A stretch of 60,549 nucleotides of DNA, the filler included, from Hydrolagus affinis (lineage: Eukaryota), in the NCBI GenBank assembly GCA_012026655.1. It is 5 parts of 5 records of this genome, joined end to end, with 100 filler letters (N's around TTAATTAATTAA, not from the genome) between each part and the next. Parts side by side here need not be neighbours in the genome. Positions count along the whole stretch, not along the records: positions 35,183 to 47,871 come from JAAILG010021520.1; 4 more parts are not named here. One strand, written 5' to 3'. A program made the translations under genes and the position numbers. Positions 35,183 through 47,871 of the stretch are shown here, one piece after another. The first letter of the stretch is position 1. The number at the start of each line of letters is the position of its first letter. The notes beneath the pieces were generated by a model, which was not told the origin of the DNA, made no database searches, and was given only the letters and a program-made list of their open reading frames with translations.

Positions 35183-35479
35183 CATTAAATATTGTCATCT
35201 CCAAAGCATCTGTGTAAAAACAAGAGGCATTCCAAAACATTGATGACTATTGAGCATTTTAAATACCAGAATAGCAGGTTTGATTATCTGAGATTAGAAG
35301 CAGGTTAAAATTCATAGGTTGGGATGAGCTACTGCTTCAAGAATATTGTAGAAAGAGAATCTAGTCCTACCCATGCGTTTGTTGACAACACCAAGGGGTG
35401 AATGTTAAACAGCATGCTCGTGTGCATTTGCAATTAATGGACCCCTTGGGCAGAGCACTGGTGCACAGCTAGTGCCTAT

Positions 35480-35960
35480 GGAATTGTACCCTGAAGGTTA
35501 TCCAGAGAATAACGGGTTGAGGCAATACTCTGCCGCCCATGTCCTCACCCATTTGAGACTGCACCCCCATTACCCGAGTCCCTGCAAGACTCCACTGGCT
35601 GCCTGTTGCAGAACAGATCGATTTCAAGATCCTCCCTCTCACATGCAAATCAATTCTGACCCTGATCCCTCCCGACCTCTGCGATCTGCTTACACCCACC
35701 CACTCCACTACCCACTGCCATAGCTCAGCTAAGTCACTTTGCACGGCCTCATCCCCTCAACTGAACATATAGTTCAGCCATTATACTCCGAACCTCTGGA
35801 GTTTGCTGCCTCAATCCCTTCATTTCAACTCTTTTTTGTCCGTCTTCAAATTGCAATTGAAGACTTTTCTCTTTGACTGCACTTTCGGTCACCTCCCCTC
35901 TCTCTCCAGGTTGGCGTGAAATCATGCCACTGTCAAGTGCTCCAAGACGCCACCCTCCTG
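35480..35960 (+). mobile_element. L2 LINE 3' fragment
   Basis: PITRVPARLHWL..RSISRS and PNLWSL motifs; L2-type 3' end. Confidence 0.7.
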
Positions 35961-36129
35961 AAGCACGTTGCATACACGTAGGTTGCCGTGATTGTGGAGA
36001 AACTCTCAATAAGATATTTTCCCCAATTTCCTTGGCTGCGCATGTGACTTTGCTCATCAGATGTTAAGAATGTGGTTTGAGATTTTGACCAGGGCTGTCT
36101 TTGGCAAGACTCAAGACCCTCCTTGTTCA

Positions 36130-37295
36130 ACCACGCCTGTGGTCACCATTTTACCCCTATCCTCCCTGACCTCCATTCCTCCTGTCCTTGAAAGAGTAGT
36201 TGCCTCCCAGCTCCGCTCTTTCCTCTCAACTCACTCACTCTACAAGCCCTCGCACGTCTTGTGGCGTCCCTCAGTGCTCTGTCCTTGGCCCCCCCTCCTC
36301 TTCACCCTCTACATTCTCCCCCTCAGTGACATCATCCGCACACATGAGGTAAATTTCCACATGTATGCGGATGACACCCAACTCTACCTTTCCGCTTCCT
36401 CCCTCAATTCCAGGACTACTGGCTTTCTGACTGCGTGTCTGTCTGACATTGAGTCCTGGATGAGGGACAACTTCCTCCAACTAAATGTCAACAAGCCAGA
36501 GGCCCTCCTAATTGGCTCGCGTCAGCACCTCTACACCTCAGGCGCTGGCAACAAAAGCATCCAAGGCTGTACTCTCCATCTCTCAAAGTCAGTCAGAAAT
36601 CTGGTCGTCTTGTTCGATCCTGGACTGTCCTTCCTCCCCCAAATCTGCACCATGACCGGAACTGCCTTCCACCACCTCCACAACATTGCCAGATTCCACC
36701 ACTGCCTCACCCCCCAAGCTGCCAAAATGCTTGTTTACACGTTCATCACATCAAGGCTTGAAAACGGGAACTCTCTCCTCGTCAGCCTTCCCAGCTCCTC
36801 CCTTCACAAGATCCAGACTATTCAGAGCTCTGCAGCTCGTGTACTCTCCTGTACTAAGCTCCAAAACCACATCACTCCCACCCTCGTCCGTCTCCACTGG
36901 CTCCCCATCCCCCAGAGGATCGAATTCAAGATCCCCGTCCTCACTTTCAAGGCCATTCACAGCTTTGCACCCCTACTCCATGTCCCCCGCTCGAACCGCC
37001 CTACCATCAGTGGCCGGGCTTTCAGCCTCTCTGCCCCTACACTCTGGAACTCCATCCCGCAATCCCTTCGCCTCGCTTCCTCCCTTTCCTCCTTCAACGC
37101 CGGTCTCAAGACCTTCCGCTTTGACCGTGCCTTCTGCTGCCCTCCTAATTCTCTTCTCTTTCCTACTCTTCGTCCCCTTACCCCTACCCTGACCCTTCCC
37201 CCCTTACTCGGGTCCCGATCTGACAGTTCAGTGCCTTGGGAAGTCCACCCTACGTGAAAGGTGCTCTATAAATGTACTTTTATTGTTGTTGTTGT
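36130..37295 (+). mobile_element. L2 LINE reverse-transcriptase and C-terminal region
   Basis: PLLFTLYILPL..FHMYADDTQLY..LSDIESWMRDNFLQLN..HWLPIPQRIEFK; GTT tail. Confidence 0.93.
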
Positions 37296-37499
37296 ACTGA
37301 TCCCAACCCCTACTTCGGTCGAAATCCTGTTTGCCCAGTGCCTTGTGATATCCTCCCCACATTAAAGGTTTTATACAATTGTAATTTGTTGTTGATAAAT
37401 GCTTAATTGGTTATTTTCACTATTTTCTTGGCTGCCATGTGACTTTCCTCACCTTGTACAAGTTTACATGACTGCCCCAGAACACACTAACAATTGGCA

Positions 37500-39395
37500 G
37501 CTGAGAGAGTGAAAAGTTTGAGAGAGGATTTAGCTAAAATAAACTGGGACATTAGACTTAAGGATCTGACAGTAGATCAACAATGGCAGACACTTAAAGA
37601 GATAATGCAAAATTCCCAGTGAGCACGTATTCCTTTGAGGAACAAGAATGCCACCGGTGGTCCAGCCATGGCTAACTAGAGCAGTTAGGGAAAGTATCAA
37701 GTTAAAAGAAGAAACTTATAAAACAGCTAAGATGAGTAGTAAACCCGAGGATTGGGATAGCTTTAGGGATCAACAAAGGAGAACCAAAAAAGTGATTAAG
37801 GGGAGAAAATGGAATATGAGGGCAAACTACCAAGGAATATAAAGACAGACTGCAAGAGGTTTTACAAATGTATAAAGAGGAAGAAGCTATCAAAGGTAAA
37901 TGTGGGTCCGTACAGGCAGAGACAGGGGGAATTATAATAGGGGACATAGACATGGCAGAGTCATTAAACAAGTACTTTGCTACTGTCTTCACCTTAGAAG
38001 ACACCGAAAGCCTACCAAGAATAGAGGGGAACCAAGAACACAATGTTAGCAAGCAACTTAGGGAAATTAATATTAGTAAAGAATTGGTTTTAGGTAAATT
38101 GTCAGGTCTAAGAACTGATAAATCCCCTGGACCCGATGGCCTACATCCAAGGGTTTTAAAAGAGGTGGCTACTGACATAGTGGGTGGTTTGTCTTTGATC
38201 TTCCCAAATTCTCTGGATTCTGGAATGGTTCCCAGTGATTGGAAGATTGCAAACGTAACTCCACTATCTAAGAAGGATGGGAGAGAAAAGATGGGGAATT
38301 ATAGACCAGTTATTCTGACATCAGTGACAGGGAAAATTCTTGAATCCTGAATTAAAGATGTCGTTATGGGATACCTGGAAGACCATAACAAGATTAGGCT
38401 GAGTCAATATGGCTTTACAAAAGGGATGTCATGCTTAACTAATCTGTTAAGAGTTTTTTTGAGGATATATCTAGCAGGTTAGATAGGAGAGAACCAGCAG
38501 ATGTAGTATATTTAGATTTTAAGAAGGCATTTCACAAAGTGCCACATAAAAGGCTATTGCGCAAGGTTAAGGCCCATGGGATTAATGGGAGCATATTATC
38601 ATGGATTGAAAGAGTGGCTAACGGGTAGAAAACAGAGAGAAGGGATAAATGGGTCATTCTTGAATTGGCAGGATGTGACTAGTGGATCAGTGCTTGGGCC
38701 TCAGCTATTTACAACTTACATCAATGATCTAGACGAGGACATTGAATGTAACGTATCTAAATTCGTGGATGACACTAAACTAGGTGGGAGAGTAAACTCT
38801 AAGGATGATGCAAAAAGATTGCAACAGGATATAGATAGGCTAGGAGAGTGGGCAAGTAGGTGGCAGATGGAATTTAATGTGGGGAAGTGTGAAGTTATTC
38901 ACCTAGGTAGCAAAAATAGAAAAACTGATTATTTTCTAGAAGGGGAGAGAATAGATAGTGTTAGTGTTCAGAGGGATTTGGGTGTCCTTGTACATCAGTC
39001 ACAAAAAGTTAGTTTGCAGGTACATCAAGCAACTAAGAAGGCGAACGGCATGTTAGTGTACAGAAGAATTAGGGGAGATCTTATTGAAACATATAAGATT
39101 CTTAAAGGGCTGGATAAAGTAGACAATGAGGGACTGTTTCCCCTGGTAGGAGAATCTATAACCAGAGGGGTCATAGTCTTAAAATTATGGATCAGCCTTT
39201 TAGAACAGAGTTAAGGAAACATTTCTTCACTCAGAGGGTATAGATGCTCAGTCCTCGAACATTTTTAAGGCTGAGACTAATAGATTTTTTAAAACTAGAG
39301 GGATTAGGGGGTATGGGGATCGGGCAGTTAATTAGAGTTATGGCAGGGCAGGCTTGAGGGGCCAAATGGCCCACTCCTGCTCCTAATTCTTATGT
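37500..39395 (+). mobile_element. CR1 LINE ORF2, decayed
   Basis: KSPGPDGLHPRVLKE..DWKIANVTPL..GNYRPV; GSVLGPQLF..FVDDTKLG; ATGGCCCACTCCTGCTCCT tail. Confidence 0.93.
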
Positions 39396-39955
39396 AAGTT
39401 TCTCTCAAACTGGGAGGCGTTTCACAGGGTTGGGCTCCCACAACTGAGGCTCTTCAATCTGTCCAATGCACCTGCCCCGGTGCTTAATACATAAACTTAA
39501 TGTCATACAGTATCCATCACAACAACCTAATTTACACAGGCTGCAGAGAGTTCTCTTGAACTTTGAGTTAAAAACCCCACCCGATTTCCCCTCCATGTTA
39601 ATCTGGTAGCCAACTGCTGATAGAGCAAATTTGAAACTGCGATTACAAAATGTCTGTTCCTTTCCCCAGCTCAAAAACGCTTCCTGTTTGCGCTGGTGGC
39701 CCCTGTAAACCCCACTGTGGGGAGAGAATGGAGAGACCCCCGAAAAGGGGCCACTCACTGACTGATGCGCTGGGCGGCGGTCACTGTTTATCAGCTAAAC
39801 CGCAAACACAGACCGCTTCAGGCTGTGCTCCCCCCTCCCCCACTCCCACCCCCGAGGGCAGCCTCCAGTTAGCGGTGCTGATAACACGACCCTGTGTCTC
39901 GCTCAGCGGTGGGATCCAGCAGCAAATCAGTCTAACGTTTGCGCATTTTCTGTAC

Positions 39956-40028
39956 CTGATCCTGCAATCCCAGCCCCGAGGATCAGGACGAGGGTCAGCG
40001 CCCTGGCAGCTCCACCGGGTGAGGACAT
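39956..40028 (-). CDS. Putative signal-peptide first exon of an unidentified gene
   Basis: MSSPGGAARALTLVLILGAGIAGS followed by a phase-1 donor G|GTACAG; in-frame upstream ATGs at 40049 and 40055; locally GC/CpG-rich. No downstream exon identified. Confidence 0.55.
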
Positions 40029-40399
40029 TATAGCCGAGTTTGTCCCCATCAACATGTCTGTCTCTGTGTGTCTCTCTCTCTCTCCACCTTCCAGCCGCAC
40101 TGACTGGGGCTGTGCTTTCACTTTCACTCTCGTGTATGATTTCTCGGAAAGGGATGGTGTTTAACGCTATCATTGTATTCACAGCAGATTTGCTGTAAAC
40201 TGGGAACACAGATCCCGAGTTATCGTCATTTCTGGGAAGTCAGGAGGGCTGGGGAAAGGGAGCAATAATGTCTCACGGGTCATCTTGACTAACTGTGTGA
40301 TTGTTAAAGTAAAATACTTGCATTTGATGCATTCAATGATCGTTGTATTTGATATTAGCAGCCTATCACCTCTTTGACACGTCTGAAAGCACTGCACAG

Positions 40400-40730
40400 A
40401 CTACAACAACAACAACTTTGATCTGCAGAGCGCCCTACACTGTTCAGTGAATCGACTGTATATTTTGCAGGCGAAACGCAACAGCCAGTTGCGCACCGGA
40501 GTGTCCCACAAACATTCCTGGATTGAGTGAACACATTTCTTTTTAGGGGAATATTACGCCCAAATAAGCAATCCGCTGATCAACTAGCAACTGGGTTCCT
40601 TCTTACTGCTGGATAAACAGCCGTGTGAAGGGAGGAAATCTGCCTAATGTTTTGCCCAGCTCAGGAATCAAACCCAGGTCCTCACGGGAGGGGTGTGTGT
40701 TCTAACCAATATGTTACAGTGCTCCATAGC
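40400..40730 (-). mobile_element. tRNA/Deu-type SINE
   Basis: AAC tail, reversed body and head remnant. Confidence 0.7.
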
Positions 40731-41692
40731 ATCTTATCACGTCCGGAGATTGTCTCTCCAGAGACGTCACAGGATTTACTATGAAGTAGGCCGCCACGGC
40801 AGCTCAATTGCACACAGCGATGCCCCACACACAGCCGTGAAACAAATCACCAAAAATATTTATTTTGTTGTTCAGTAGATCGGGAGAAACTCCCTTCTCT
40901 TTTCGAGTCACAAGATCTTTGATGAGCTGTTATTGTAGTCAAAGGCAGCAAACATTTGTACCAGGAAAATCCCGAGACTCAGGAACATGACGTGAATGAT
41001 CCATTAACCTGAATGATTACAATATGTACGAGCCGCTGTCCCGAAGGACCCCACTGAGTGAATGGCACGTTTGTCATTCTCTTTGTTCTTTTATGACAGC
41101 AAGGTCACTTTGTGGTTCTGAAGTACATCTGGCTTTGGATGGCTTTCATCTCTCCTTCAGATGAGCTGCCATCCCTAGATAAGATGTAAAACTTTGGTCC
41201 TTCCTGCCTGTCTCAGATGGGACCCAAGTTTAATATTTACTCCAAAGACATCACCTCTGAAAGTGCTGCAACCCCACCACCATTGCACTGGAGTCCCAGC
41301 CTAGAATGCAAGCCTAAAACTGCAAAGATTGTGAGGGGAAAAAATGCTACGAATTGCAGCAGAGTTGCAGATAGGTTTTAAGGTGGAATTTAGTTTGGGG
41401 GCAAGACAGAAGTATGGCGGCAGGGAATTCCAAATATTAGGGGGAGTAGTGAATTAAAGTACGGTGTATGGCAGGGGAGTGGAGAAGGAGCAGATCAGAG
41501 GGCAAAGAATGTGTCAGGGCAACAAGGGATTTATATTTAAGAGCAGGACCTCTAAGTTGATCTATTCAATCCCTTTATCTTCACCTGAATTACAAGAGAC
41601 TGAAGTAAATCAGTAATGTACCTGGAATAAAAAAAATTCACAGTGGTCTGGAAATAAGCGCCACATCTGTATTAAATTTACAATGTACAGTT

Positions 41693-41925
41693 CAACAACA
41701 CCAACTTGAATTTATATTGCGCCCTCCATGCCGGACAGCGTTTCAGAGCGCTTCACAATAACGGATCCCGCGGCCAAGCCAGAGGGAGGGGAATGAAGGT
41801 GACCAAAAGCGTGATCGAAAAGAAAGGTCCTTAGCCGAGACCTGAAAGTAGGAAAAGAGGAGGCAAGGCAAAGGGAGTGAGGAAGGGAGTTCCAGATCCT
41901 TGGTGGGGTAATAGCTGAAGGCATG
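41693..41925 (-). mobile_element. L2 LINE 3' end
   Basis: PPRIWNSLPHSLCLASSFPTFRSRLRTFLFDHAF. Confidence 0.85.
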
Positions 41926-43258
41926 TAGTGTTTATTCAGAGTACAAAGTAAAATACAGATCATAGAATGTTAGTTCTTGGTTGTCCAATATTTACAAACT
42001 CTTAAGACCGATAACAAAGTTATTTAGGTGGAATTGTTTATGGAATGTGGAGAAAATCATACCATTTACAAGAAATAAAAGAAGATGTGAATGGAAACTG
42101 ATGTTTTGCATTCCAAAAATGTACAACTCTTTCATCTTGAGTCAATTAGTATATACAGTGAACTTTGAAAATGTAACAATTGCAACTATGTTTCCCCCAA
42201 AGCTCCCTATTTAAAATGAAAAGAAGTTTGAATAGAGAATATCTGACCATTTGATCACAACTTTCCAGAAAACAAATACTATCATCTTCCCATCCCAAAG
42301 CAGACCCACTTCTTAAAGGAGTTCCGTATCCCAGCTTTAACCACCCTTCCTGGTGGCCCAGAAGAGCTGTTGATTGTTCTCTGTGTAACAAAAACTACCC
42401 ATTGAGTTTCCCTTACCCACCCAGAAAGCAAGTGCTGGAAAATTCCAAGACAGATGGATGAGAAAACTAGAAAACTGCAACCCATTGGAACCAAGGAGCC
42501 AAGAGTAGCCCATTCAGTCCATTGAGTTCTTGATCCTGCTCCCTCACTGGATTAGTCCGTGCTAATTCTTGAACTTTCACTGTATGAATCTGCAGGTCAA
42601 AAAAAACAAATAGCTTAAAATAAGTCTTAGGCTCCGCCATTCTGAAGCACTCTGAGACACCGCCCGGCATGGAGGGCAGTATGTAAATGCAAGTTGTTGG
42701 CGACTGGGTAAGGGTTCATCTCAATTCGCTTTGAGACATCTCAAAGACAAAATGCAGTAAAGCATTATATCACATGCAAACATTATTATTATGGCTGCAT
42801 GTAGAATGTATATCCAGGCTGTTACAGTATGGTTGTTGACAGCGGTGGTTGCTGATTAGTCGGCTGCTTAAACAGGTTTGACTACAGATGCAAAAATTTA
42901 TTTGCATTGTAACAACGAAATGCACTCCCAGAGCTTTCTGCATAGTGACTGTAATCGGTATAAATAATAATTATTCTTGAATTTGATCCAGGGCCTTTCA
43001 CATCAGGAAGATGACTCAAAGGATATAACCATAGGATATAACCTAAAGTGTAGTGATTATGTATTTATAACCACAGTAGCTAATGTACACAAGCAAAGTC
43101 CTGCAAATAGCTATAAACTGAATGATCAATTTTATCGAGAGGAAGATTAAAGGGTACGGAACGTAAATAAAAGACTGGGATTAGATGAGGTGCCTCATGT
43201 GAGATTACGCATCAGTGTGGACTTGAACACACCAAATGTTGTTATTTGTTTCACGTAC

Positions 43259-43570
43259 CCAATCAATCTAGGATCCACTCCATCTCTTTGGGCTGAGCCA
43301 GACTTTCGTGGTAAACTCTGCACGTGTACTTGCTGGCAAAAGCATTTTTGATGGGCATTAATCTCAACGTGCTCAAGCAGCAATACAGGCCATCCTTCCC
43401 ACAAATGGGATCACTGAGCTCCACGCTCTCGGGCAATTCCTCCCCATCCTTGCACCACACAACGCCAATAGCTTTTGGGGAAAAGGAGTGGATACTGCAG
43501 TTCAGTACGAGTTCCTCCTTGGTGATCGCCAGCCCTGATGCTTTCCAGATCGCATCCAGTTTCGGAGTGG
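43259..43570 (-). CDS. Ig C1-set exon c of the multi-C1 gene
   Basis: Acceptor TTCTTAG; TPKL..LVLNCSIHSFSPKAIGVVWCKDG..KYTCRVYHESLAQP; TGA at 43263-43265 just before an intact phase-1 donor G|GTACGT. Confidence 0.85.
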
Positions 43571-44019
43571 CTAAGAATGAAAAACAATTTCAAACACCGC
43601 TGTAGTTAATCAGGAACAGGAGGAGACCATTCAATGCACAAAACATGCAGTTACTACACTTTACAGTGTATCCTTTGAAGCACTTTGGGGCGCCCTCCTG
43701 ACACAAAATGCCCTATGCCAAGTATGCGATTTATTATTTAGCCCATTTGTTGGGTCTATTCTGCCAGGACTGGCTGACTGACTGATCTGACATATCCACA
43801 CATGCACTCACCCATCCATCCACATATACACACACACAACCACCCATCCACTTGGTCCTTTCATCCTTGGCAGTAATTTAGTCAATCAATGCTGGTCATC
43901 CTCCAAATATGACATATTCTCCCTGAGCTGTGATACCCAAAATTTAGGAACTTAAATACAATGTTTCATATCAAGAGGAAAGTAATGGTCCACAAATGGC
44001 TATGAATAATATAATATAT

Positions 44020-44360
44020 AATAATATAAGATAATCCTTGCATTTGATATAGCGCTTTCCACATCTTATCAACGTCCCAAAGCGCTTCACAGAATATACT
44101 GTAAAGTGAATTGACTGTATATATTTGTGGGCGAATCGCGGCAGCCAATTTGCGCACAGCAGTGTCCCACACACAGTCGTTGATTGAAATGATCAATTTT
44201 ATTATTGTGTTTTTTTTGGAGGGATTATTATTAGTTGTGTGGAGTAAGAAACTTGTCCAAGGTTTCGCCCTGACCTGCCTGGATTCGAACACAGGTCTCC
44301 TCAGCTTGGTCTCCCCAGCTTGCAAGACAAGTGCTCTAACCACTAAGCCACAGGAGCTCC
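44020..44360 (-). mobile_element. tRNA/Deu-type SINE, young full-length copy
   Basis: Near-identical to the reverse of the 60285 copy, including the head duplication. Confidence 0.9.
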
Positions 44361-44807
44361 ACGCATTCACGAATGAGTGCTGAAACGAGTGACCGATTTT
44401 CTTTGGGGGATTGTTGACTAGGACACCAGAAGAAACTCCTTTCTCTTTACAAATAGCACCATAGGATCTTTAACAACCACCTGAACAGGCAGACGGCTCC
44501 TCGGTTTAATGTCTCATCTGAAAGGCAGCATCTCCGTCAGCGAAACACATTCCCACCACCGATTGGAGTGTCATCTTAGACTATATGATTCCAAATCCTG
44601 ATTTGGGATTTGAACCCATAACCATCTTACTCAGAGGCAAGAATGCCACCACTGAGCCAAGCAAATATCCAGCAAAGTTCATCAGATCTGCCACTGACTA
44701 GAATTTTTGCTACTTGTGAAAATAACTGATCATTTTTTAAATCACCATTAATATCTTCCCCAGTGGCAGTTTACAACACACATCAGTGCATCACTGTTCC
44801 CGCGTAC

Positions 44808-45191
44808 CTTTAACGCCCAGCACAATCGCTCTCTCCATGACCAAACCGGTAGCAACATGTTCCACTTTGCAGATGTAAGCTGTTCCATCATCTTCTTGCA
44901 CAGCCGGTGTGAGCATGAGCACGCTGGTGACAATATACGAGTTATCCGCATGCATAAACTCGCTGATGTTGTGAGCGTATTTGCCGCTCTGTGCCTTTGG
45001 GTTGTCGGCAACCACAACTCTGCTCTGGTGATCAACCTGTGCAATCTCGAGCCTTGCACCATCTCGCCCAACCTGGTACCACGTGATACCTAATGGTCTT
45101 GGCTTGAACTCGTTTACCAGACAGGTCAAAGTCGTTTGCTCTTGATGAAAGACTTGAGGAGTCACAATAATCTCCGGTATCTTGGGTGCAA
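44808..45191 (-). CDS. Ig C1-set exon b of the multi-C1 gene (long C-D loop)
   Basis: Acceptor CCCTAAG; APKIPEI..LTCLVNEFKPRPLGITWY..YICKVEH..VLGVK; donor G|GTACGC; 384 nt, phase 1-1, open. Confidence 0.88.
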
Positions 45192-45742
45192 CTTAGGGAA
45201 ACAAAATTGATTGAGTGTTAAAAATATGACCAATATACTCCGCACAAGGTTACAAGCAGCTGGTAGCTCTCTATACTCCAGAAAAAAAATCACAAAGAAC
45301 AATCTGATCCATTTACATTCAATCTTCCTACCAATCTATCTTCCCCTCTTCAAAATTACAAAACTGAGTGAGGATGATTTATCAGCCTAAATTGCTCTGA
45401 ACTGCTGTCATGTAGTCCAGCCAAGCAGGCCAACTGGAATAATGTAAGAACTATTTTGTCTTCAAATTTAAAATCATATAGAAATACACAGAACTCTTTA
45501 TTTGAATACTGTACTTTTTAAAAAAAAAGAATTTAGGAAAGACAACTGCCAAATTGAGACTAGATTTAAAATGTTTGCATACATCCACACAAGTATGAAT
45601 TTTTAATGATATTTCAGGCTAAGGCCTGGTGGAAATTTAGGCCTCGAATGAGACAGCAGCATATTTGCCTATTCAACAGTGCAGAACACTGGAAAACAAG
45701 AGAATCAAAGGCAATAAATGGGCATGGAGGAGATGGGATTAC

Positions 45743-46015
45743 CTTTACAGTGGGACACATCCACACTACAGGAATACTCTAGTTTGCTTCGGAGAGGAAT
45801 CATAACTTCATCAGATGCTGCTGGCACACTTCTCCGAGGCGTAGAATCTTCACTGCAGCAATGAAGTATGTGCCTTAATGGCCTGCAACCCGTCTTGAGC
45901 ACCCTCACCACAGATGACTGATTTGGTCTGTATTTAGAACTAGAGTAATCTGGATTACCCTCTTCCAGGTGTGCATAAGGATGGGCTATGATCATTTTAG
46001 CCTTTAGACAAACAT
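45743..46015 (-). CDS. Candidate 91-codon Cys-rich exon of the multi-C1 gene
   Basis: Acceptor TTTCCAG, donor G|GTAATC, 273 nt, open in phase 1-1 (DVCLKAK...LEYSCSVDVSHCK); no recognisable domain. Confidence 0.5.
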
Positions 46016-46514
46016 CTGGAAACAAGAATAGAAGGCCTCTGAATGTCTAAGTCTCAACATTTGTTCTATGTTTGTGTGCAAATAAACGTAACCCTTAGCG
46101 ATGTGAGGGTTACAAGAGTTCAATGTAAGTATATATAGGACCGGATTAAGTCAGGAAAGTAGGACAAGGGACATAAATTTAAAAGGTTGTACTTGAGTTG
46201 TGATAATAATCATAATCATTACGTTTTATACAATGCCTCCAACAACAAAATGTCTCAAAGTGTTTCCCAGAGTCTTTCAAGTAAAGTGTCGTGACTATAC
46301 TTGTTGGCAAATGGAGTAGCCAATTCAGGCAGAGCAAAGCCTCACAATCAGGCAGAACAGAATGGGCTCATATCTGGTGGATTGGCAGCTAGGACACAGA
46401 GAGAGACTTCATTCTCTGGGATTTTTAAAAAAAAAAATCAACCTGAACTGGTTAACAGGAGCTTGGATTAATGTCTCATCCACAGAAAGGAATCTCTGAC
46501 AATGAAGCACTTAC

Positions 46515-46560
46515 CTGTCTGGTTTGGCATCCCTTGTCGAGAGGATGTGGTTCATCAACC
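46515..46560 (-). CDS. Short cytoplasmic exon of the multi-C1 gene
   Basis: Acceptor GTTACAG, donor AG|GTAAGT; 46 nt, phase 1 to 2 (GLMNHILSTRDAKPD). Confidence 0.6.
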
Positions 46561-46618
46561 CTGTAACAAGCAGTTAGCAAGGAAATGAAAATCGTGAGCA
46601 AAAATGATCTCTCCTTAC

Positions 46619-46735
46619 CATTGCCTGATGATTTCAGGTGAATACAAAAGCCAAACGACAAACAAATCATACAAAACAGGAGCACGCCGAATATAATTCC
46701 GAGGATTGCAGTCACCGGTGGGGTTAGATGTGGTT
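46619..46735 (-). CDS. Transmembrane exon of the multi-C1 gene
   Basis: Acceptor ATTATAG, donor G|GTAAGG; 117 nt, phase 1-1; EPHLTPPVTAILGIIFGVLLFCMICLSFGFCIHLKSSGN. Confidence 0.82.
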
Positions 46736-47119
46736 CTATAATCAAACAATAAAGTGTAAATATCAGTGCAGCTTGTAAACACAGACACAATACATAATAC
46801 AGCTTTAGAACACGTAGGTGAGTAATATTTTGTACCACATTACCTTCCAATGGAAAAGCTTTTTCTGTCCTCCCAAACCAAGATTACCCAAACCATTAAT
46901 ATGGCTCCTTACTTATCGGAACCTCACAAACCACTTTACAGGGGGCCTTGGCAAGTGAAGTGACTGTTTTTTTGGAGGCAATTTTGACCCAGAGACAAGA
47001 AACATATCTTATGCAACATTTTAAATGGGATTGAAAAAGTAAACCCAGAACAATACGTTTGGATGTACCAAGGCGCTAGTACAGCAGGACATGGGGTTAG
47101 ATTTGCAAAAGGCAATTTC

Positions 47120-47310
47120 AGGACTAACACCAATATTTGTTTCTTCACTCAGAAATAATTAATGACTGGAACAGGTTGCCAGGAAGGGTGGTTAAGGCCA
47201 GAACACTGGATTCATTTAAGAAAAAGCTTAATGTTTTGATGGGAGGACATTCTGAAGAGATGAGCATGGATGGGCCAAAGGGCCTTCTTCATCCGAACCA
47301 ATTTTGTGCT
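47120..47310 (+). mobile_element. CR1 LINE 3' fragment
   Basis: FFTQ..INDWNRLP..VVKA..SFKKKL and GATGGGCCAAAGGGCC tail. Confidence 0.7.
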
Positions 47311-47432
47311 CTTGTTCGCTACCAGCTGAGTCTGGCTAATGTCATGGAGATCTGAGTGACACAGCACTGACACAAGCACCTCTGCCTCCACGGTTCAACA
47401 AGCTCCTGTGGAACTCATAGCACTGAACGTAC

Positions 47433-47753
47433 CTTCGACACGGAGGCTGGCTTCCAATGTGAAATCATGGTGAAGTGCCTTATACCTCACTATACATCTG
47501 TATTTATTCCCATCGTCCCCCAGTGTAGGTGTGACCTTCAGCAGGCTGTAGGTTGTAAACGTGCCATCGCTGCTGTTAACTAGAGCTGTTCTGCAGACAC
47601 CCTCCACGAGAGATCTGCTCTTCCCCTGGGAGACTTCCATCCAGCTAATGTCAATGCCACTCGGGTAGAATCCACTCACGTTGCATTGCACAGAGGCTTC
47701 CTTGCCTGACACCACGGAGATGTGAAGAGGTGACAAATGGATGCTTGGTCTAG
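47433..47753 (-). CDS. Ig C1-set exon a of the multi-C1 gene
   Basis: Acceptor GAACAG; RPSIHL..VQCNVSGFYPSGIDISW..NSSDGTFTTYSLLKV..YRCIVRYKAL; donor G|GTACGT; 321 nt, phase 1-1. The FYP and WxE motifs resemble B7-H6/tapasin/SIRP C1 domains. Confidence 0.9.
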
Positions 47754-47871
47754 CTGTTCACAACATAAATAGAAAAGCCCCTTAAAAACAGTCGCAGGAT
47801 AGAGCCAGGATTACATAGGAACTTCAACATGCCATCCCTTCATCTCCTGTGTAGATCACCTTGGCACCCAC

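Follow-up and report, generated by a model that had tools for sequence, protein, structure and literature searches.

Why would a gene carry C1-set immunoglobulin (Ig) domains behind its transmembrane (TM) exon, and where would such domains act? This question is raised by a locus of Hydrolagus affinis, which we analysed in positions 35183–47871 of a 60,549-nucleotide stretch of genomic DNA (hereafter, the window). The gene is read on the minus strand and comprises, in transcription order, a C1-set exon (C1a), a TM exon, a candidate exon of 46 nt, an exon termed X, and two further C1-set exons (C1b and C1c). Our best explanation, to which we assign a probability of roughly 80%, is that these exons belong to one transcribed gene of the B7H6 family, a shortened paralogue with a TM cassette exon and an inherited layout of post-TM C1 domains. 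As judged from its sequence, the window covers the 3′ half of a divergent, shortened paralogue of the B7H6 (NCR3LG1, NKp30-ligand) family.

All six exons proposed in a first-pass annotation of the sequence were present on the minus strand, each with AG/GT borders, and every exon except the 46-nt exon starts and ends in phase 1. C1a, C1b, and C1c matched the Pfam C1-set family (PF07654) with 52.6, 42.2, and 57.5 bits (gathering cut-off, 21 bits) and contain the canonical Cys/Trp/Cys residues at positions 23/37/86, 23/37/107, and 24/38/83, respectively; exon X matched no Pfam family. The split codons at the junctions encode E (C1a/TM), D (TM/X or C1a/X), V (X/C1b), and A (C1b/C1c), so that skipping of the 46-nt exon, alone or together with the TM exon, leaves the frame open. 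Inclusion of the 46-nt exon leads to ...DAKPD-R-CLSKG-stop, with the stop six codons into X. Searches by tblastn and a listing of stop-to-stop open reading frames (ORFs) revealed neither a V nor a leader nor any other Ig exon between the TM exon and C1b, and no V, leader, TM, or extra Ig exon in the rest of 35183–47871. The structural claims of the first-pass annotation were thus borne out by sequence reading, translation, Pfam, and these searches: the exon borders and phases, the three C1-set domains, the lack of a leader or V exon between TM and C1b, the frame shift with a stop after RCLSKG in X, and the frame open from C1a (with or without TM) through X-C1b-C1c.

The order of the exons was supported by run X1, a DNA run independent of the assembly. 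A 2407-base X1 contig was collinear with 44630–47044 at ~98% identity, and further X1 contigs were collinear with 42632–43667 and 47279–47777 (~98–99% identity). These collinear contigs make a misassembly between C1b and the TM exon unlikely, and the longest of the three regions spans 45200–46500, where a misassembly had been considered as a threat to the proposed gene. X1 differed from the window by ~1.4% overall, as would a different individual or a close relative, and in the introns it had, among other differences, 18 extra bases behind 47400 and lacked 10 bases at 45714.

An exhaustive HMMER search with C1b retrieved 230 relatives at E-values up to 0.001. The best of these were proteins of 600–2100 residues from frogs, coelacanth, lungfish, and horn shark, mostly recorded as 'uncharacterized' and in one case annotated as NCR3LG1; others came from elephant shark, basking shark, catshark, stingray, skate, sawfish, reedfish, and newt. 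A single internal TM segment followed by C1 domains was found in 119 of the 179 retrieved relatives, typically in the order a-TM-b-c, and this set included elephant shark, sharks, rays, coelacanth, lungfish, reedfish, newt, and frogs. BLASTP gave a fixed order in the relatives, namely V, directly followed by a C1a-like domain (residues ~110–265), a hydrophobic segment (~230–300), a C1b-like domain (~410–560), and a C1c-like domain (~540–670), and the top match of C1a was always the pre-TM C1 domain of family members (38–42% identity). A second search for relatives was based on the window exons aligned on a full-length scaffold. The exons aligned collinearly with the relatives, with the TM exon on the relatives' TM segment, and a basking shark relative has a TM exon of 117 nt and a C1b-type exon of 384 nt, the same sizes as in the window.

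The identity of the family was indicated by two relatives. The V-C1 unit of the horn shark relative (P0006) best matched the human B7-H6 structures 6yjp and 3pv6 (E 1e-33, over both domains). The nurse shark protein QTT61906.1 (UniProt A0A8A9WSM4; 1092 aa), recorded as 'natural killer cell cytotoxicity receptor 3 ligand (B7H6)', consists of a signal peptide, V, C1, TM (258–284), a mid domain, two C1 domains, and more Ig domains, so that ~800 residues of Ig follow the TM segment. This protein and its orthologues in elephant shark, sharks, rays, coelacanth, lungfish, reedfish, newt, and frogs share the order of the window gene: C1, a single TM exon, mid, C1b-type, and C1c-type. The window gene differs from this group in its mid domain of only 90 residues and in its end after two post-TM C1 domains, whereas at least four more domains follow in the relatives.

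A maximum-likelihood tree of 48 single domains placed the three C1 domains by position. C1a fell in the clade of pre-TM C1 domains, which includes that of horn shark P0006, with a Shimodaira–Hasegawa-like approximate likelihood ratio (SH-aLRT) support of 97. The second post-TM domains took in C1b (SH-aLRT 94) and had the mid domains as their sister group (96 jointly), and C1c fell among the third post-TM domains (SH-aLRT 91). Since cartilaginous and bony fishes both occur in each domain clade, the arrangement is older than the split between them. The layout with C1 domains behind the TM exon is therefore family-wide in non-amniote B7H6/NCR3LG1-like genes, inherited, and already in public records. 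This answers the proposal to examine whether the exon order is conserved, the order being shared by relatives from sharks to amphibians, and it sets aside the view of the locus as an isolated oddity, given the 119 of 179 relatives with TM and then C1 domains. The literature search found no account of Ig domains behind the TM of B7H6, its coverage being incomplete and a prior description possible.

PDB sequence searches with the window domains gave generic C1 similarity only (IgG CH3, UrIg2, and SIRP, and for C1c beta-2-microglobulin and the class I alpha-3 domain of the major histocompatibility complex [MHC]). Tandem UrIg-like or SIRP-like genes were dropped as candidates, because the UrIg2, IgG, and SIRP matches are of this generic kind and the full-length relatives are B7H6-like. 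A beta-2-microglobulin gene was likewise dropped as an identity for C1c, because C1b is joined to it in phase by splicing and its orthologue is the third post-TM domain of the relatives.

Comparison with the mid domain of the relatives showed that exon X is not an unrelated exon. This mid domain comprises ~142 residues between the TM segment and the C1b-type domain, contains the conserved motifs HLEE, GFRP, and PDI..D.GA.L...V.H, and has no cysteine at the canonical F-strand site; a weak C1-set match was seen for half of these domains. Aligned by hhalign with a profile of 12 mid domains, X was homologous with a probability of 84.6% (E 6.8e-6; profile columns 14–79). It matches the first two thirds of the domain; the E-F loop and the G strand are missing, and the C-strand Trp and the B-strand Cys, the latter present in only part of the relatives, are substituted. 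AlphaFold2 modelling of X with the mid-domain alignment yielded a mean predicted local distance difference test (pLDDT) score of 50, and the intact mid domain of a basking shark relative was predicted as a confident beta sandwich (pLDDT about 87–90). By sequence comparison, exon X is a decayed, truncated Ig-like mid domain, and the model suggests that it is probably unfolded and now linker-like.

Transcription of the locus was examined in runs X2–X4, which are stranded poly(A) RNA, all from one sample. The first mate was on the plus strand in nearly all exonic reads, which fits minus-strand RNA. The sense depth in X4 was 18.3 for C1a, 19.0 for X, 21.7 for C1b, and 22 for C1c, and in introns it was 0 at 45240–45415, 0.11 at 45416–45591, 0.5–0.8 at 46120–46471, and 0.1 at 43832–44007. 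Partial bins agreed with the exon borders at 47753, 46015, 45743, and 45191, and depth fell to 0 directly after the donor of X. This pattern indicates that transcripts exit X at its donor, resume at the C1b acceptor, and never reach the AATAAA at 45502. The even exon depth and the near-zero introns argue for a single transcription unit, which upholds the claim that the exons form one locus.

The TM exon behaved differently from its neighbours. In X4 its sense depth was ~6–9x compared with ~20x in the flanking exons, and site 46656 was covered by 6 reads compared with 20–23 at the sites of other exons. In X2 the TM exon was at ~4x, as were the other exons (4x), and this parity shows that the lower depth in X4 is not a mapping artefact. 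The TM exon appeared to be partly included, at roughly 30–45% overall, and long mRNAs with and without TM are both indicated to exist. No sense reads covered positions 46550 and 46553 of the 46-nt exon in any of the three RNA runs, and the depth of its bin was fully accounted for by the 28 nt of the TM exon inside that bin. A few RNA reads in the opposite orientation (first mate minus) crossed the 46-nt exon and both of its borders unspliced, at 46514–46593, with two differences; these may represent antisense RNA, unprocessed RNA, or another copy.

NCBI gene models that skip the TM exon also occur in other species. An exact in-frame loss of this exon distinguishes isoform X6 of the red stingray (Hemitrygon; 38 aa) and isoform X2 from X1 of the basking shark (Cetorhinus) LOC144684899 (39 aa), and the manta (Mobula) X2 model has an exact TM-exon deletion; TM-less models were also found in catshark and in one further relative. 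The elephant shark sequence V9K7L7 (UniProt), which we take to be cDNA-derived, has the TM segment followed by ~810 residues. Of the splicing switch that the first-pass annotation had envisaged, the alternation between TM-containing and TM-lacking long mRNAs thus stood, on the basis of depth here and of TM-skipped models elsewhere, and a switch between anchored and secreted products is plausible. The short-tailed membrane form via the 46-nt exon was not supported, with 0 sense reads in three RNA runs and an uncovered stretch around the AATAAA at 45502, a signal that this form would require.

At the end of C1c, an in-frame TGA occupies the site of Q or R in the relatives, as seen in alignment of the motif W-V/I-L/V-D-[Q/R]-L. 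The phase-1 GT that follows at 43258–43257 is the ancestral donor, still intact. Sense reads of X4 continued past this donor (10 at 43156, 9 at 42891, and 9 at 42856), so that the old intron now probably serves as 3′ untranslated region (UTR); bin depths in 42856–43262 are inflated by repeats. Judged against the relatives' sequences, this copy has lost further domains that they carry after C1c. The coordinates of these features are compiled in the table.

Table. Features of the B7H6-family gene in the window, in transcription order
Feature	Positions	Strand	Remarks
Exon C1a	47753–47433	−	C1-set; AG at 47755–47754, GT at 47432–47431
TM exon	46735–46619	−	117 nt, phase 1-1; hydrophobic stretch, then basic residues
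46-nt candidate exon	46560–46515	−	AG..GT; good AG and GTAAGT sites
Exon X	46015–45743	−	91 codons, phase 1-1; apparent truncated mid-domain remnant
Exon C1b	45191–44808	−	384 nt; C1-set with long C-D insertion
Exon C1c	43570–43259	−	C1-set; resembles beta-2-microglobulin and MHC-I alpha-3
In-frame TGA stop	43265–43263	−	Two codons before phase-1 GT at 43258–43257
3′ UTR, probable	43262–42856	−	Extends to at least 42856; AATAAA at 42902

Taken as one gene of the B7H6 family, the locus may be explained as follows. The ancestral layout, common to cartilaginous and bony fishes, would have comprised a leader, V, C1, one TM exon, a disulfide-less Ig-like mid domain, and a row of C1-set domains. In the window gene, the mid domain would have decayed to X and the C1 row would end after two domains at the TGA. 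The TM exon would act as a symmetric (phase 1-1) cassette: its skipping would give a secreted V-C1-X-C1-C1 chain and its inclusion a type I membrane protein with the tail X-C1b-C1c, and the 46-nt exon would be either unused or decay-inducing.

Sequence features of the family bear on where the post-TM domains may sit. The Cys-Trp-Cys residues were kept in 218 of 298 post-TM domains (73%) and in 93 of 111 pre-TM domains, and this retention, together with the recurrence of TM-less isoforms and genes across species, favours a location in the secretory pathway. The density of N-glycosylation sequons was 1.30 per 100 residues before the TM segment (z 10.4) and 0.64 after it (z 3.0), the latter value lying within the range of secreted Ig constant regions. 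Because most post-TM domains keep their disulfide cysteines, we infer from these sequences that the secreted form may be the context in which they fold and act. The basic residues after the TM segment and a mid domain without the canonical disulfide are compatible with a cytosolic tail. We consider it unlikely that, in the TM isoform, the C1 domains behind the TM segment are made and kept in the cytoplasm and there give the membrane B7H6 of ectothermic vertebrates a functional tail. If it were true, such a tail would represent the first C1-set Ig domains working inside the cell, and one exon set would serve two compartments, the choice being made by a single cassette exon.

Several points weigh against our explanation. 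The RNA read numbers were small, and SINE (short interspersed nuclear element) repeats swamped the junction table, so splicing was deduced from exon and intron depth rather than from counted junction reads. The N-terminal half of the gene, with its leader and V exons, lies beyond the analysed piece and is hence unseen, the piece ending at 47871, 118 bases upstream of the C1a acceptor. Identity to all known relatives was low (~40%), with none above ~46% for any window exon, which marks the gene as a divergent paralogue. The weak enrichment of sequons after the TM segment fits a cytoplasmic site equally well as a lightly glycosylated secreted form. Finally, the truncated X, with its pLDDT of 50, and the early stop could mark a copy that is becoming a pseudogene.

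A transcribed but decaying copy, in other words a young pseudogene of a longer B7H6-family gene with products that have no function, is unlikely in our judgement, although several features speak for it. A conserved Q/R codon has given way to the TGA, with the old donor still intact, and 9 of the 15 listed exonic differences between individuals are non-synonymous (6 are synonymous). One of them lies at position 43494 (codon 25 of C1c), where X1 and all RNA reads have T instead of A on the plus strand; the change from AGT (Ser) to AGA (Arg) abolishes the sole N-x-S sequon of C1c (N-C-S). Against decay, the frame is open across five exons, Cys-Trp-Cys is kept in all three C1 domains with Pfam scores well above the cut-off, and all splice sites are intact, with introns cleanly removed at ~20x. 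Moreover, the ratio of non-synonymous to synonymous differences is 1.5, below the ~2.5–3 expected without constraint, an expectation that is our own estimate and not a computed value.

It is very unlikely that the main product is a short-tailed membrane protein made via the 46-nt exon, with the downstream C1 exons mostly untranslated. Such a product would draw on the good AG and GTAAGT sites of this exon, on the stop after six codons in X, and on the separate 273-aa V-C1-TM genes of basking shark and manta. Yet the 46-nt exon had 0 sense reads in the three runs when neighbouring exons reached up to 20x, and no such exon was found in any retrieved relative. Nonsense-mediated decay (NMD) is usually triggered by an exon junction more than 50 nt downstream of a stop; with X, C1b, and C1c spliced on, the last junctions would follow the stop in X at more than this distance and render the mRNA a target. 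The predicted NMD fits the absence of this mRNA from the reads and makes the short-tailed product improbable.

The arrangement as two adjacent genes, a B7-like V-C1-TM gene with a short tail ending in or near X and a separate C1b-C1c gene with its own promoter, other species' models being fusions, might appeal to the AATAAA between X and C1b and to the fusing of neighbouring genes by automated models, but it is highly improbable in view of the lack of a leader or V exon between TM and C1b, the equal sense depth of X, C1b, and C1c with only 0–0.11 at 45240–45591 so that the AATAAA is not reached, the same order in 119 proteins from many lineages, and a positional orthology that reaches back to the split of cartilaginous and bony fishes.

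The B7H6-family gene can be compared with several known systems. Human B7-H6/NCR3LG1 (PDB 3pv6, 4zso, and 6yjp) has a V-C1 ectodomain followed by a TM segment, as in the family of the window gene. Behind the TM segment the two differ, the window gene encoding Ig-type domains. The cytoplasmic tail of human B7-H6 is non-Ig and retroviral-Gag-like. UrIg and UrIg2 of elasmobranchs (PMC12227049; PDB 9dmx) likewise combine a non-rearranging V with multiple C1-set domains, and the TM of UrIg2 stands at the C-terminal end, after nine C domains (PMC12227049). The window domains matched 9dmx weakly and no more closely than IgG or MHC domains. The Ig heavy chain (IgH) resembles the window gene in its V and several C1-set domains and in the selection of an anchored or a free form by RNA processing; the TM exons of IgH, however, are 3′-terminal and subject to a choice between polyadenylation and splicing, whereas the TM exon of the window gene lies amid Ig domains and there is no rearrangement. 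Soluble CTLA-4 and soluble Fas are made by skipping a TM cassette exon. The likeness here consists in a symmetric internal TM exon, without which a type I membrane protein is secreted instead of anchored. What had been the cytoplasmic tail amounts to a short peptide in CTLA-4 and Fas, whereas in the window gene it consists of folded-type C1-set domains in a row and is larger than the ectodomain.

The result for the locus itself is modest, namely a shortened and divergent member of the family with an unusual layout that was inherited and is not new. B7H6 is a ligand of NKp30 and is known in mammals as a simple V-C1 membrane protein, and NKp30 is, to our knowledge, the one natural-killer receptor conserved from sharks to humans. 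The comparisons above show that, behind its TM exon, the ancestral B7H6 gene already had several antibody-constant-type domains in a row, and with a TM exon that behaves as a cassette one gene could supply either a ligand held on the cell or a large V-plus-C1 chain for secretion. The layout is relevant to the origin of switching between membrane and soluble immune ligands, to the old link among B7, C1 domains of the MHC/beta-2-microglobulin type, and antigen receptors, and to the possibility of C1-set domains in the cytosol.

In the basking shark, LOC144684894, LOC144684898, and LOC144684899 are consecutively numbered loci on one chromosome (OZ077455.1; one of them at 108528077–108570298), and a separate 273-aa V-C1-TM 'NCR3LG1-like' gene was found on the same chromosome record. 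These loci suggest that B7H6-family genes of both long and short form are clustered there.

Two kinds of repeats were observed in and near the gene. The intron between C1b and C1c contains at 44008–44359 a tRNA-like repeat of very high copy number, probably a SINE, with a DNA word depth in the millions and an RNA depth in the thousands; an ARAGORN scan of this repeat found no tRNA gene. Downstream, fragments of LINE-type (long interspersed nuclear element) retrotransposons lie on the opposite, plus strand at 36061–39214, with ORFs of 398, 160, and 212 aa. No Ig exon was found among these ORFs, two of which matched Pfam RVT_1.

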